A DNA stretch of 64,000 nucleotides from Schizochytrium sp. TIO01 (GCA_004764695.1 SMSO01000014.1:7284125-7348124); one strand, 5' to 3'; shown: positions 17,802 through 26,589, counted from the first letter of the stretch. Translations and numbers: made by a program. Notes: a model not told the origin generated them from the sequence alone.

Positions 17802-20800
17802 TTAGGGTTTAATCCATTCGAAAATGTAAGGGCCCAGCAATCCCAATGATTCACTAAAGGCAACGATTAAAGCTTCCAATATATCAAGCTCTACTTTCTG
17901 CGTAGCAAGAAATTCCTCTTTCGAGCTCTGCTCACCATTACTGCTAGCAAGCAGACTCTGTGCAAAACGACCGACTTTCACTGAAGATGGCATAGAAAGT
18001 GCATTGTTTACAGCATGTATACAACCAAGCTCACGAGAGATCTGCTCAAGACTTGTCCTTCTTGTCTTTGCATAATAAATCTCTTCATTCAATTTCAGCT
18101 CCCTCTGTCCTTCATGGCTCAATCTTAATCTAAGAATTAGCAGACCAAATAGCATCATCTCCGTTCGTCAGTTAACAGTTTCACGTCATTTAAAGGTACC
18201 CACAGTAAGTACAGTTTCATTTATTCTCTGATGTTATCATGCTCTCTATTAGATCCACACTCAACCAAACAAACAATTCCACAACAAATTTGCATTGGCG
18301 CGAAGAAAAACATCGACAAAACAACACACTAGACAACCCACGACGCAACCAACCAACCAAGTCTCATGCACACAAAAGTCCACGAGCTACTGCTTAAACA
18401 ACTTACCTGCATAATCTCAGAGACCAGTTCTCTCCCAGCGCCGCAGCCACTGCCTTGGCGCCCTCGTCGCCGATATTGTTTTCAGAAAGACTGTTGATTT
18501 GATTCAATGAGGGCAAGCAATACATTACACGTTATACATTGCATTAGATACATCCATGCATGAATATATGTGAGTGATCTGGGTCGGCTCTCAGGATTTC
18601 ATCTTTGTTGTGTTGCCCTTTTGCTCTTTGTTCAATATATGCATACTCAGTCAAACAGACAACTTATCCATCCATCAAACAAACAACCGATTGCATAAAC
18701 TTGCTAAATAACACCAACCAAATCAACAAACCAGGGAAGCAAGCATCATGTACAAAAAAACTCCACGAGCTATGATATTGCTAAGACAACTTACTCTATA
18801 TCTGTCAGCGACCGGTTCTCTTTCAACGCTGCAGCCACTGCCTCGGCGCCCTCGTCGCCGATTTCGTTATCTCGAAATCTTTCAATTTGATTGAATGATG
18901 GCAAGCAATACATTACACATTTTTATTGCATTAGATGCACGCATGCATGCATCAACGTGAGTGATCTTGGTTGGCTTTCAGGATTAGGTTTTTATTGTGT
19001 TGACAATTGGCTCTCTGTTTGGTGGGTGCATACTCAGTCAAACAGACCAATTCATCCGTCCATCAAACAAACAAGAGATTGCATAAACTTGCAAAACAAC
19101 ACCGTCCCACCCACCAAACAACAAACCAAGCATCATGTACAAACAAGTCCACGAGCTGCGCTGTTGCGTAGACAACTTACGATAGTGATGTCAGCGACCG
19201 GTTCTCTTTCAGCACCGCAGCCACTGCCTTGGCGCCCTCTGAGCCGATCTGGTTTCTAAAAAGACTGTCGATTTAATTGAATGATGGCAACCAATACATT
19301 ACACGTTACATATTACAATAGATGTACGCATGCATGCATGAACGTGAGTGATCTAGGTTGGCTTTCAGGATATGTTGTTATTTTGCTCTTTGTTCGATGG
19401 ATGTATACTCACTCAAACAGACAACTCATCCATCCATCAAACAAACAAGACATTGCATAAACTTGCAAAACAACTCCGACCCACCCACCAAACAACAAAC
19501 CAAGCATCATGTACAAACAAGTCCACGAGCTGCGCTGTTGCGTAGACAACTTACGATAGTGATGTCAGCGACCGGTTCTCTTTCAACGCTGCAGCCACTG
19601 CCTTGGCGCCCTCGTCGCCGATCTGGTTGTTATCAAGACTGTCGATTTGATTGAATGATGACAAGCAATACATTACACGTTACATATTACAATAGATGCA
19701 CGCATGCATGCATGGACGTGAGTGATCTAGGTTGGCTTTCAGGATTAGGTTTTTATTGTGTTGACAATTGGCTCTCTGTTTGGTGGGTGCATACTCAGTC
19801 AAACAGACCAATTCATCCGTCCATCAAACAAACAAGAGATTGCATAAACTTGCAAAACAACACCGTCCCACCCACCAAACAACAAACCAAGCATCATGTA
19901 CAAACAAGTCCACGAGCTGCGGTGTTGCGTAGACAACTTACGATAGTGATGTCAGCGACCGGTTCTCTTTCAGCGCCGCACCCACTGCCTTGGCGCCCTC
20001 TGAGCCGATCTGGTTTCTAAAAAGACTGTCGATTTGGTTGAATGAGGGCAAGCAATACATTACACGTTACATATTACAATAGATGTAAGCATGCATGCAT
20101 GGACGTGAGTGATCTAGGTTGGCGTTCAGGATATGTTGTTATTTTGCTCTTTGTTCGATGGATATATACTCACTCAAACAGACAACTCATCCATCCATCA
20201 AACAAACAAGAGATTGCATAAACTTGCAAAACAACACCGACCCACCCACCAAACAACAAACCAACCATCATGTACAAACAAGTCCACGAGCTGCGCTGTT
20301 GCGTAGACAACTTACGATAGTGATGTCAGCGACCGGTTCTCTTTCAGCGCCGCAGCCACTGCCTTGGCGCCCTCGTCGCCGATATTGTTGCCATAAAGAC
20401 TGTCGATTTGATTGAATGATGGCAAGCAATACATTACACGTTACATATTACAATAGATGCACGCATGCATGCATGGACGTGAGTGATCTAGGTTGGCTGT
20501 CAGCATTTATCTTTGTTGTGTTGTCATTTTGCTCTTTGTTCGATGGATGTATACTCCCTCAAACAGACAACCCATCCAACCATCAAACAAACAAGCGATT
20601 CCATAAACTTGCAAAACAACACTGTCCCACCCACCAAACAACAAACCAATCATCATGTACAAACAAGTCCACGAGCTGCGCTGTTGCGTAGACAACTTAC
20701 TTGAGTGATGCCAGCGACCGGTTCTCTTTCAGCGCTGCAGCCACTGCCTTGGCGCCCTCTGAGCCGATATCGTTGCTTCCAAGACTGTCGATTTAATTGA

Positions 20801-23800: not shown

Positions 23801-26589
23801 TGAGTGATGCCAGCGACCGGTTCTCTTTCAGCGCCGCACCCACTGCCTTGGCGCCCTCTGAGCCGATTAAGTTGCTTCTAAGACTGTCGATTTGATTGAA
23901 TGATGGCAAGAAATACATTACACGTTACATGTTACAATAGATGCACGCATGCATGCATGGACGTGAGTGATCTAGGTTGGCTTTCAGCATTTATCTTTGT
24001 TGTGTTGTCATTTTGCTCTTTGTTCGATGGATGTATACTCACTCAAACAGACAAATCATCCATCCATCAAACAAACAAACAAACAAACAAACAAGCGATT
24101 GCATAAATTTGCAAAACAACACCGACCCACCCACCAAACAACAAACCAAGCATCATGTACAAACAAGTCCATGAGCTGCGGTGTTGCGTAGACAACTTAC
24201 TCAAGTGATGTCAGCGACCGGTTCTCTTTCAACGCTGCAGCCACTGCCTTGGCGCCCTCGTCGCCGATTTCGTTGCCAGCGAGACTGTCGATTTGATTGA
24301 ATGATGACAAGCAATACATTACACGTTACATATTACAATAGATGCACGCATGCATGCATGGACGTGAGTGATCTAGGTTGGCTTTCAGCATTTATCTTTG
24401 TTGTGTTGTCATTTTGCTCTTTGTTCGATGAATGTATACACACTCAAACAGACAACGCAACCATCCATCCATCTATCAAACAAGCGATTGCATAAACTTG
24501 CAAAACAACACCGACCCAACGCACCAAACAACAAAGCAAGCATCATGTACAAACAAGTCCACGATCTGCGGTGTTGCGTAGAAAACTTACTTGAGTGATG
24601 TCAGCGACCGGTTCTCTTTCAGCGCCGCACCCACTGCCTTGGCGCCCTCGTCGCCGATTTCGTTGCCAGCAAGACTGTCGATTTGATTGAATGATGGCAA
24701 GCAATACATTACACGTCACATATTACAGTAGATGCACGCATGCATCCATGGACGTGAGTGATCTAGGTTGGCTTTCAGCATTTATCTTTGTTGTGTTGTC
24801 ATTTTGCTCTTTGTTCGATGGATGTATATTCACTCAAACATACAACTCTTCCATCCATCAAACAAACAAGCGATTGCATAAACTTGTAAAACAACACCGA
24901 CCCACCCACCAAACAACAAACCAACCATCATGTACAAACAAGTCCACGAGCTGCGCTGTTGCGTAGACAACTTACTTGAGTGATGTCAGCGACCGGTTCT
25001 CTTTCAGCGCCGCAGCCACTGCCTTGGCACCCTCGTCGCCGATATTGTTGCTTTGTAGACTGTCGATTTGATTGAATGATGGCAAGCAATACATTACACG
25101 TTACATATTACAATAGATGCACGCATGCATGCATGGACGTGAGTGATCTAGGTTGGCTTTCAGCATTTATCTTTGTTGTGTTGTCATTTTGCTCTTTGTT
25201 CGATGAAAGTATACACACTCAAACAGACAACGCAACCATCCATCCATCTATCAAACAAGCGATTGCATAAACTTGCAAAACAACACCGACCCACCCACCA
25301 AACAACAAACCAAGCATCATGTACAAACAAGTCCATGAGCTGCGGTGTTGCGTAGACAACTTACTCAAGTGATGTCAGCGACCGGTTCTCTTTCAACGCT
25401 GCAGCCACTGCCTTGGCGCCCTCGTCGCCGATTTCGTTGCCAGCGAGACTGTCGATTTGATTGAATGATGGCAAGCAATACATTACACGTTACATATTAC
25501 AATAGATGCACGCATGCATGCATGGACGTGAGTGATCTAGGTTGGCTGTCAGCATTTATCTTTGTTGTGTTGTCATTTTGCTCTTTGTTCGATGAATGTA
25601 TACACACTCAAACAGACAACGCAACCATCCATCCATCTATCAAACAAGCGATTGCATAAACTTGCAAAACAACACCGACCCAACGCACCAAACAACAAAG
25701 CAAGCATCATGTACAAACAAGTCCACGATCTGCGGTGTTGCGTAGAAAACTTACTTGAGTGATGTCAGCGACCGGTTCTCTTTCAGCGCCGCACCCACTG
25801 CCTTGGCGCCCTCGTCGCCGATTTCGTTGCCAGCAAGACTGTCGATTTGATTGAATGATGGCAAGCAATACATTACACGTTACATATTACAGTAGATGCA
25901 CGCATGCATCCATGGACGTGAGTGATCTAGGTTGGCTTTCAGCATTTACCTTTGTTGTGTTGTCATTTTGCTCTTTGTTCGATGGATGTATACTCACTCA
26001 AACAGACAACTCATCCATCCATCAAATAAACAAGCGATTGCATAAACTTGCAAAACAACACCGACCCACCCACCAAACAACAAACCAAGCATCATGTACA
26101 AACGAGTCCATACGCTACGGTGTTGCGTAGACAACTTACTCAAGTGATGTCAGCGACTGGTTCTCTTTCAGCGCCGCAGCCACTGCCTTGGCACCCTCGT
26201 CGCCGATCTTTTTCCAAGAAAGACTGTCGAATTGATTGAATGATGGCAAGCAATATATTACATTGCATGAGAGGCACGTACGCAGGCGTGAACGTGAGTG
26301 ATCTAGGTTGGCTTGTAGGATTTCCTCTTTGTTGTGTTGTCATTTTCCTCTTTGATTAATGCATAATCAATGAATCAATGAATCAATGAATCAATGAATC
26401 AATGAATCAAGCAAGCAAGCAAGCAAGCAAGCAAGCAAGCAAGCAAGCAAGCAAGCAAGCAAGCAAGCAAGCAAGCAAGCAAGCAAGCAAGCAAGCAAGC
26501 AAGCAAGCGAGCGTCTTAACTTACTTCAGTGTTGTAGCGCCATTCTGAAGCTGTTCAAGGGCATAGACAACACGTGGGTGGTCTGACAT
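17802..26589 (-). CDS. Spliced LRR protein, 21 RI-like 28-aa LRRs with one per 84-nt exon, ~718 aa, 23 exons
   Basis: Exon 1 is 26589-26525 (MSDHPRVVYALEQLQNGATTL, donor GTAAGT, phase 2). The 84-nt LRR exons have plus-coordinate left ends at 26140, 25755, 25365, 24976, 24591, 24201, 23800, 23426, 23041, 22656, 22235, 21849, 21464, 21080, 20701, 20316, 19942, 19555, 19181, 18795 and 18407. Each is bounded by AG|...|GTAAGT, has no stop codon, and fits the consensus xLxxNxIG(D/S)EGAKAV(A/G)AALKENRSL(T/A)SL. The likely terminal exon 18129-17802 (branch GCTAAT, TTAG acceptor) is in frame with ORF 17802..18158. Total 2157 nt, divisible by 3. The terminal exon is the least certain part. Confidence 0.9.
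18300..26350 (-). repeat. ~385-bp exon+intron tandem unit x21 (LRR exon cassette array)
   Basis: Period 374-421 bp; the introns of ~290-340 nt are near-identical between units. Confidence 0.95.
26364..26508. repeat. Compound microsatellite (AATCAATG)n-(GCAA)n in intron 1 of the LRR gene
   Basis: Seen directly in the sequence. Confidence 0.9.

Follow-up and report, generated by a model that had tools for sequence, protein, structure and literature searches.

Positions 17802 to 26589 on the minus strand of a 64,000-nucleotide stretch of DNA from Schizochytrium sp. TIO01 (GCA_004764695.1, SMSO01000014.1:7284125-7348124; the whole stretch is hereafter called the window, and positions are counted from its first nucleotide) are a transcribed, spliced, protein-coding gene of 23 exons. 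Twenty-one of these are 84 nt long and each is predicted to encode one leucine-rich repeat (LRR) of 28 amino acids, of the ribonuclease inhibitor (RI)-like type. The gene occupies an array of 385-bp tandem units in which an earlier note, made from the sequence alone, had suspected a hidden LRR gene of 21 cassettes. The account favoured here, to which we would give a probability of about 0.6, is that this spliced gene is one of at least 100 alike placed at other chromosome ends, that the scaffold of the repeats is homogenised while diversifying selection acts on short variable patches, and that the genes form a recognition repertoire.

Gene structure, transcripts and predicted protein

Tandem Repeats Finder (TRF) reported the 385-bp unit in 20.6 copies between 18417 and 26354, with 87 % matches. 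Scanning the minus strand for AG, 84 nt and GT(A/G)AG identified exactly 21 sites, spaced 374-421 bp apart and always with the donor GTAAGT. All 21 are open in the frame starting at the second exon base (offset 1), the other two frames containing stops in most units; the number, the integrity and the shared phase 2 of these exons are as the earlier note had described them. It had also placed the gene ends correctly (ATG at 26589, first exon to 26525, terminal exon 18129-17802). The gene consists of an ATG exon, the 21 exons of 84 nt and a terminal exon of 328 nt, which were joined by script into 2157 nt, that is 718 codons and a single terminal stop. The introns number 22, range from 277 to 337 nt and are without exception of the form GTAAGT...(C/A/T)AG and in phase 2.

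Exon 1 (26525-26589, minus strand, as are all exons of the gene) starts with the ATG at 26589 and contains 65 nt, namely 21 codons (MSDHPRVVYALEQLQNGATTL) and 2 nt, followed by the donor GTAAGT; it is kept as MSDHPRVV..LQNGATTL across 11 paralogous loci. LRR exon 1 (26140-26223), with the variable word LSWKK, has the AG, 84 nt, GTAAGT pattern, an open frame and a Pfam LRR_6 match (E 0.0047). The pattern scan then gives LRR exon 2 (25755-25838, LAGNE; LRR_6 E 1.5e-4, 22.0 bits), exon 3 (25365-25448, LAGNE), exon 4 (24976-25059, LQSNN), exon 5 (24591-24674, LAGNE), which is a recent duplicate of unit 2 with introns 0.7 % apart, exon 6 (24201-24284, LAGNE), exon 7 (23800-23883, LRSNL), exon 8 (23426-23509, LFRNQ), exon 9 (23041-23124, LGSND) and exon 10 (22656-22739, LVGNN). 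It continues with exon 11 (22235-22318, LRNNQ), exon 12 (21849-21932, LYGNK), exon 13 (21464-21547, LADND), exon 14 (21080-21163, LAGNE), exon 15 (20701-20784, LGSND), exon 16 (20316-20399, LYGNN), exon 17 (19942-20025, LFRNQ), exon 18 (19555-19638, LDNNQ), exon 19 (19181-19264, LFRNQ), at which many spliced paralogue contigs anchor (19181/19184), exon 20 (18795-18878, FRDNE; spliced joint, LRR_6 E 3.3e-4) and exon 21 (18407-18490, LSENN; spliced on both sides, LRR_6 E 2.9e-4). The 14 words listed in the earlier note are all present as written. The terminal exon (17802-18129), with its acceptor at 18130, holds 1 nt, 108 codons and TAA (17804-17802).

Two peculiarities of this copy were observed. 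Its first intron, which separates the ATG exon from LRR exon 1, contains two microsatellites at 26365-26512, (AATCAATG)x5.8 and (CAAG)x26. Close paralogues mostly end in ...PYIFE followed by TGA, whereas here TGG (W) is found and the frame runs four codons longer (WIKP) to the TAA (17802-17813); this shift of the stop from TGA to TGG is specific to the window copy and its identical twin at G000:C13:4063634.

The list of open reading frames (ORFs) over the gene holds the terminal exon on the minus strand and plus-strand ORFs of 91-127 amino acids, and nothing else, as had been remarked before; the gene therefore escapes an ORF scan. The plus-strand ORFs were rejected as genes, since it is on the minus strand that the introns have GT..AG borders, a strand also confirmed by the spliced contigs.

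Public sequencing runs X1, X4, X9 and X19, of which X1, X4 and X9 come from three studies, were aligned over 16001-19300. In X1 and X9 1.76 kb of intergenic DNA (16001-17760) is entirely uncovered and coverage sets in at 17781/17787, and these runs thus behave as RNA; X19 covers everything and is DNA, and X4 is mixed. Across a 9.2-kb stretch with an exonic share of about 27 %, 18 runs guessed to be RNA contained 18-30 % of the sampled words, compared with 42-58 % in DNA-like runs. The joint 18490 to 18795, present in X1, X4 and X9 and at depth 0 in the DNA run X19, removes exactly the predicted 304-nt intron, with ends that are CT..AC on the plus strand and so GT..AG on the minus strand. The junction between LRR exon 21 and the terminal exon was seen in X9, where a contig ending at 18407 runs into the first 16 nt of the terminal exon and another ending at 18131 (exon border 18129-18131) runs into exon-21 sequence; an X9 contig of 332 nt (17787-18118) is identical to the terminal exon, at a depth of 591. 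Spliced RNA joining the predicted exons, which the earlier note had proposed to look for, was in this way found for the exon 20/21 and exon 21/terminal junctions, neither of which occurs in the DNA run.

More than 100 further joints, none of them in X19, link constant parts of different exons with 10, 13, 18, 19 or 20 letters between; translated on the minus strand, the letters give T-CTT-xxx-xxx (L-x-x). Such joints are expected for spliced paralogous 84-nt exons that differ only in the variable patch. A loose end at 18480 in X9 represents a paralogue's ATG exon joined to its first LRR exon, and the joint 18490 to 19181 in X1 may reflect either a transcript that skips exon 20 or a paralogue. 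Independently of these runs, the ORF P0002 from MMETSP, a transcript-derived paralogue, maps to contig C31 of G000 as 84-nt exons and a terminal exon, with AG/GT borders. Intron sequence within 18130-18406 and 18491-19180 is covered in the RNA-like runs X1 and X9 at about a third to half of the spliced depth, with the adjoining intergenic DNA at zero.

Profile, fold and database searches of the gene were made exon by exon, and the joined 718-amino-acid sequence was used for the checks of length, frame and hydropathy. The repeat consensus, (J)LxxNxIG(D/S)EGAKAV(A/G)AALKENRSL(T/A)SL, in which J is the codon split by the intron, is found in 21/21 units with an exact period of 28 amino acids. With Pfam LRR_6, whose cut-off is 23.4, single exons reached 17.3-22.0 bits (E 1.5e-4 to 4.7e-3); the model is halved at the exon border, leaving profile positions 10-24 only. 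P0002 matched LRRC34, RNH1 (ribonuclease inhibitor), NOD2 and NLRPs in the PDB, and its AlphaFold2 (AF2) model has alternating strands and helices with a period of 28 amino acids (predicted local distance difference test, pLDDT, 70-87 in the LRR part) followed by long helices; a homologous-protein search with P0002, in its length band, returned P0002 itself only. Outside the LRRs there are only the 21 amino acids of exon 1 and the 108 of the terminal exon, both at noise level in Pfam, and neither NACHT nor NB-ARC was found; a ROC-COR GTPase module was likewise absent from the gene by Pfam and exon structure. The exon-by-exon searches revealed no signal peptide or signalling domain, and no 19-amino-acid window of the joined protein is hydrophobic enough for a membrane segment (hydropathy, by script). 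The predicted product is a soluble protein of 718 amino acids with a conserved N-terminus of 21 amino acids, 21 RI-like LRRs and a helical tail of 108 amino acids.

The tail domain is present in at least 101 copies in the genome, at 26-100 % identity, and matches just two of 1.84 billion cluster representatives, both of them MMETSP transcript ORFs. Its AF2 fold, predicted from an alignment of 24 copies, has helices at 5-45, 70-94 and 98-106 and a disordered loop after the first helix (mean pLDDT 72.8). Pfam returned only noise (PGAP1_2nd, E 0.15), the ESM Atlas nothing above 0.90, with weak Ribonuclease_3-flavoured leads only, and Foldseek against the PDB only helical hairpins of a generic kind, none of them at E <= 0.001. 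The tail may be a lineage-specific adaptor or oligomerisation module.

Variation and exchange among the repeats

At J and at the second, third and fifth positions of the word LxxNx (x2, x3 and x5), 5, 9, 7 and 6 kinds of residue occur in the window, and at most 3 elsewhere. Pairwise comparison of these four codons gave a proportion of nonsynonymous differences (pN) of 0.54, a nonsynonymous divergence (dN) of 0.97 and a ratio to the synonymous divergence (dN/dS) of 1.84, compared with pN 0.068, dN 0.072, dS 0.134 and dN/dS 0.53 for the other 24 codons. The introns of the window have a mean pairwise difference of 0.073, and no 12-column window in them exceeds 0.15, versus 0.51 in the variable codons. 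They had earlier been called almost invariant; their variability is about a seventh of that of the four hypervariable codons, but with a mean pairwise difference of 7.3 %, plus indels, the phrase was too strong. J, x2, x3 and x5 are positions 5, 7, 8 and 10 of the LRR motif LxxLxLxxNxL. In the structures of RI, of the variable lymphocyte receptors (VLRs) and of plant LRR proteins these positions are solvent-exposed residues of the concave beta-sheet.

The family was sampled at 17 loci through the terminal exon, and removal of near-duplicates left 14 loci, which together contain 188 LRR exons; genome-wide, one 385-bp unit has at least 391 matches. The paralogous arrays comprise 4-21 exons and are all in frame. 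Across the 188 exons of the 14 loci the variable positions have an entropy of 2.6-3.5 bits, with 14-17 residues, compared with at most 1.3 bits in the rest of the exon, and nucleotide diversity is 0.544 at the variable positions, 0.080 in the rest of the exon and 0.094 in the introns. There are 144 distinct four-residue words among 172 repeats, and the donor GTAAGT is without variation in 172 units. Not one of the 188 exons has an in-frame stop, where 32 would be expected at x2, x3 and x5 from position-specific base frequencies (approximate P 1e-14). Patches one nucleotide apart differ by 74 nonsynonymous and 6 synonymous changes, an excess over the 81 % nonsynonymous expected (approximate P 0.004), and single-step changes in the scaffold number 54 nonsynonymous and 40 synonymous, a deficit relative to the 71 % expected (approximate P 0.003). 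Enrichment of nonsynonymous change at the x positions of LxLxxNx, the second thing the earlier note had asked of the repeats, was thus borne out both in the window (dN/dS 1.84 vs 0.53) and in the family (74:6). At x5 nearly all codons are of the form NAN (N, D, Q, K, E, Y, H), and the variation is therefore constrained, not random. The idea that the junction codon is freely hypervariable was rejected: it is mostly of three old types, the exon ends TGA, ATC and CAA (D, S and N), each tied to its own synonymous wobble base of L27.

Introns of one locus diverge from each other about as much (0.084) as introns of different chromosome ends do (0.095), which indicates that the family is homogenised genome-wide; scaffold codons and introns are about 91-93 % identical both within and between chromosome ends. 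The variable patch varies almost independently of these flanks. Among units whose introns are 0.5-1.5 % apart, 48 % of the patch nucleotides already differ, and 16 pairs with 165 identical flanking nucleotides include 9 with the same patch and 4 that differ at four or more of the 9 patch positions.

The exons are mosaics of few segment types: codon 8 (TCA/GAC), codon 15 (GCT/GGT) and the exon end (TGA/ATC/CAA) are present in all 12 combinations, and 13 of the 35 recurrent patches occur on more than one background. Array length (4-21 cassettes) and content vary even where the flanking exons are identical. The first-exon region of the window gene is 100 % identical to that of locus L011 and its terminal exon 100 % identical to that of L001, which has 20 entirely different cassettes despite the identical terminal exon. 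In its last two cassettes the gene is almost the same as L002, with intron differences of 0.000 and 0.003; in the interior ones it is not.

The chromosome end and the published repeat

The window starts with 90 copies of the telomeric repeat (AACCT)n (1-452; TTAGG on the other strand; TRF), the motif of which agrees with the published assembly. It is followed by a 371-bp AT-rich tandem repeat in 11.2 copies (811-4954; 76 % matches, TRF), lying between telomere and 28S as do the published Group 2 LORE-TEARS, and by a 28S-5.8S-18S ribosomal DNA (rDNA) unit (8995-14518, minus strand; Rfam RF01960, RF00002 and RF02543) with the 18S at 12735-14518 (Rfam). This unit is downstream of the LRR gene and has the same orientation, towards the telomere. 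The 5S ribosomal RNA (rRNA) gene (27060-27178, plus strand; Rfam RF00001, 96.5 bits) is divergent from the LRR gene and 470 bp upstream of its ATG. The order is telomere, 28S/18S, LRR gene, 5S, the LRR gene being about 17 kb from the telomere, and a divergent 5S is likewise present in 8/9 paralogous loci.

The chromosome ends of Aurantiochytrium limacinum MYA-1381 have TTAGG telomeres, 18S-28S genes read towards the telomere and 5S genes read away from it, and the Group 0 LORE-TEARS of that genome, made up of units of about 385 bp and located between the 18S closest to the telomere and the nearest 5S, have been described as spacer without GenBank similarity (bioRxiv 10.1101/2023.06.15.545109). 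From the locus order it follows that the array at 18417-26354 (TRF) and the published Group 0 LORE-TEARS are one and the same: they agree in unit length (about 385 bp), in the position between 18S and 5S, in the TTAGG telomere and in the order and orientation of the rRNA genes. The difference is that the repeat was published as spacer, whereas here its units are the exons and introns of spliced genes. The words leucine and LRR are absent from the LORE-TEARS genome paper (bioRxiv 10.1101/2023.06.15.545109), the term "LORE-TEARS" was found in no other paper of the literature searched, and LRRs are likewise absent from two later Aurantiochytrium papers. In that literature the repeats are described only as spacers.

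Two more arrays were seen in the window. A 458-bp unit in 4.1 copies (58702-60521, plus strand; 92 % matches), the consensus of which starts ATTGGCTCGGAGGGTGCAAAGGCC and reads IGSEGAKAVAKALEG...LQTLE followed by GTACGT, is a further array of RI-like LRR exons with introns, near a second 5S gene (57215-57332). A 126-bp repeat in 25 copies (35354-38519; 84 % matches) has the coding-like consensus VRIWDLETGEE..., one WD40 repeat per 42 amino acids. The chromosome end bears several repeat-based, immune-type genes.

The telomere repeat at the start of the window stands at 7.28 Mb, inside the 7.46-Mb contig C13 of G000, and terminal-exon paralogues form inverted pairs about 33 kb apart, e.g. C30:5483499(+) and 5516564(-), with the arrays L007, L008 and L009 identical. 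Because of this internal telomere repeat and the inverted pairs, it seems that the G000 contigs either consist of chromosomes linked at their ends or contain duplicated ends, and copy counts are to be read accordingly.

Proposed explanation, alternatives and known systems

In the mechanism that we propose, the subtelomeric arrays would recombine with one another by unequal crossing-over and short-tract gene conversion, which would homogenise the neutral and structural parts of the units, and the same exchange would add or remove cassettes in frame, while diversifying selection would keep the concave-face residues different. The outcome would be a repertoire of cytosolic binding surfaces. The least certain steps are that this repertoire may serve the recognition of variable ligands (immune-like, e.g. 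against the host's mirusviruses) and that the shared C-terminal helical hairpin may couple it to a common partner or to oligomerisation. The earlier proposal of a diversifying recognition receptor holds for an exon-per-LRR gene with focused nonsynonymous variation; the word receptor went beyond the evidence, which is of a 21-amino-acid N-terminus, 21 LRRs and a 108-amino-acid tail, with no signalling domain, signal peptide or membrane segment. We consider improbable the more far-reaching version, a contingency or adaptive-like system in which about 50 chromosome ends would recombine often, perhaps under regulation, and shuffle cassettes and patches so quickly that clones or cells would differ in cytosolic recognition repertoire, with the rDNA recombination machinery as the generator of diversity.

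Several points weigh against the recognition repertoire. On the side of expression, the RNA status of the runs is a tool's guess backed by the coverage pattern only; 2 of the 22 junctions were seen specifically for this gene, the other junction evidence coming from paralogues; and the depth over intron pieces is 33-225 in X1 and X9, compared with 211-216 for the spliced joint, which suggests that part of the transcripts is unspliced or intron-retaining, or that pre-mRNA is abundant. On the side of function, the gene has no signalling or effector domain; its tail has no recognisable relative in Pfam, the ESM Atlas or, by Foldseek, the PDB, and the homodimer prediction for it scored 0.00, which counts neither for nor against binding. 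The placing of the variable residues on the concave face would rest on the LRR motif and the model of a paralogue, not on a model of the window protein. As to selection, the P values are approximate because the pairwise tests treat related units as independent, and scaffold codons are barely more conserved than introns in the family (0.080 vs 0.094), their conservation mainly reflecting concerted evolution.

The alternative that survives best, although unlikely, is a housekeeping scaffold tied to its location, in nucleolar, rDNA or chromosome-end biology, with hypervariability as relaxed surface constraint in a recombining subtelomere. Such a protein would fit the role that the published paper proposed for the repeats themselves, the strictly conserved 5S - LRR gene - 18S placement beside the telomere and the lack of an effector domain, and RI-like LRRs are also found in non-immune proteins (LRRC34, RanGAP, tropomodulin, axonemal proteins). 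Relaxed constraint, however, would not yield a nonsynonymous excess (74:6 vs 81 % expected), hold x5 to NAN codons or give a diversity 5-7 times the intron level, and housekeeping has no need for at least 100 genes with 144 four-residue words in 172 repeats.

Still less likely is a programmed, targeted diversification, templated or mutagenic and possibly somatic or clonal, that would make the patches instead of ordinary mutation, conversion and selection. It could account for introns about 1 % apart accompanying patches in which 48 % of the nucleotides differ, and for the 4 of 16 pairs that have 165 identical flanking nucleotides and differ at four or more of 9 patch nucleotides, and the array does lie in recombination-prone subtelomeric rDNA. 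A shuffling of mosaic segments in which each flank has few alleles and each patch many nevertheless explains the same decoupling, and very recent duplicates retain identical patches. All four bases occur at the variable sites, so that there is no deaminase- or DGR (diversity-generating retroelement)-like signature; mutagenesis of that kind was set aside as the main explanation on this ground. A dedicated enzyme or a bank of donor cassettes was neither looked for nor found, and rare somatic variants are invisible in contigs. A targeted mechanism is not needed to explain the pattern.

That the array is a transcribed satellite, its splice sites and open frame copied by concerted evolution and its protein without function, would agree with the similar diversity of scaffold and introns (0.080 vs 0.094), the intron-containing RNA and the lack of proteomic evidence, but is highly improbable given 0 stops where 32 were expected (P 1e-14), the nonsynonymous deficit of the scaffold (54:40 vs 71 % expected), a donor invariant in 172 units, ATG and terminal exons conserved in paralogues down to 26-60 % identity and arrays of 4-21 exons all in frame.

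The closest known parallel to the recognition repertoire favoured here, the LRR-ROCO (and NB-ARC-TPR) genes of Ectocarpus, correctly cited in the earlier note, carry one LRR per 72-nt exon, undergo exon shuffling and are under positive selection at the concave face (Zambounis et al. 2012, PMC3341825; PMC11378527). Both organisms are stramenopiles, and in both there is one LRR per exon, with equal exon length and a symmetric phase that allows cassettes to be gained or lost in frame. Positively selected concave-face residues, rapid turnover of the family and a proposed immune-type recognition are also common to the two. The Ectocarpus exons, however, are of 72 nt (24-amino-acid 'typical' LRR) and are combined with a ROC-COR GTPase, whereas those described here are of 84 nt (28-amino-acid, RI-like) in a gene without GTPase, its introns are a 300-nt tandem repeat homogenised genome-wide and the genes are in the rDNA spacer at chromosome ends. 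The window gene works like the Ectocarpus-type system and is not a member of it.

With the LRRs of vertebrate RI and NOD-NLRC proteins the gene shares the RI-like repeat of 28 amino acids, LxxLxLxxNxIGxxGaxxLaxaLxxN, and a cytosolic character, and P0002 matches RNH1, NOD2 and NLRPs. NOD1, NOD2 and NLRC3 use 84-nt exons of one repeat each. The vertebrate repeats, in contrast, are not in homogenised tandem DNA and are not hypervariable from repeat to repeat in a focused way, and the window gene has no NACHT, CARD or PYD and an unrelated C-terminal helical domain. It is not a nucleotide-binding LRR receptor (NLR), because it has no NACHT or NB-ARC domain.

Three further systems resemble the gene or its family in single respects: the VLRs of lamprey and hagfish have a conserved LRR framework with hypervariable concave positions, the major histocompatibility complex (MHC) has diversity at few codons and introns homogenised by recombination, and the subtelomeric var and variant surface glycoprotein (VSG) families undergo ectopic exchange among chromosome ends. 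Unlike in these, the germline genes here are complete and conventionally spliced, with no evidence of somatic assembly, mutually exclusive expression or surface exposure. The window gene is not VLR-like in its assembly, since the germline gene is complete and yields an open frame of 718 amino acids by ordinary splicing.

With this result, a class of chromosome-end repeats published as 'non-coding' is read anew as exons and introns belonging to a family of more than 100 genes. That practically all chromosome ends have spliced protein-coding genes within the rDNA unit is an unusual arrangement, and in these genes concerted evolution and diversifying selection act a few nucleotides apart, a very clean natural case. 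A heterotrophic marine protist, tractable as a model and with persistent mirusviruses, gains a large candidate repertoire of variable intracellular binding proteins. This opens to testing the ideas that immune-like recognition of this kind may exist outside animals and plants and that subtelomeric recombination may serve as a generator of diversity.

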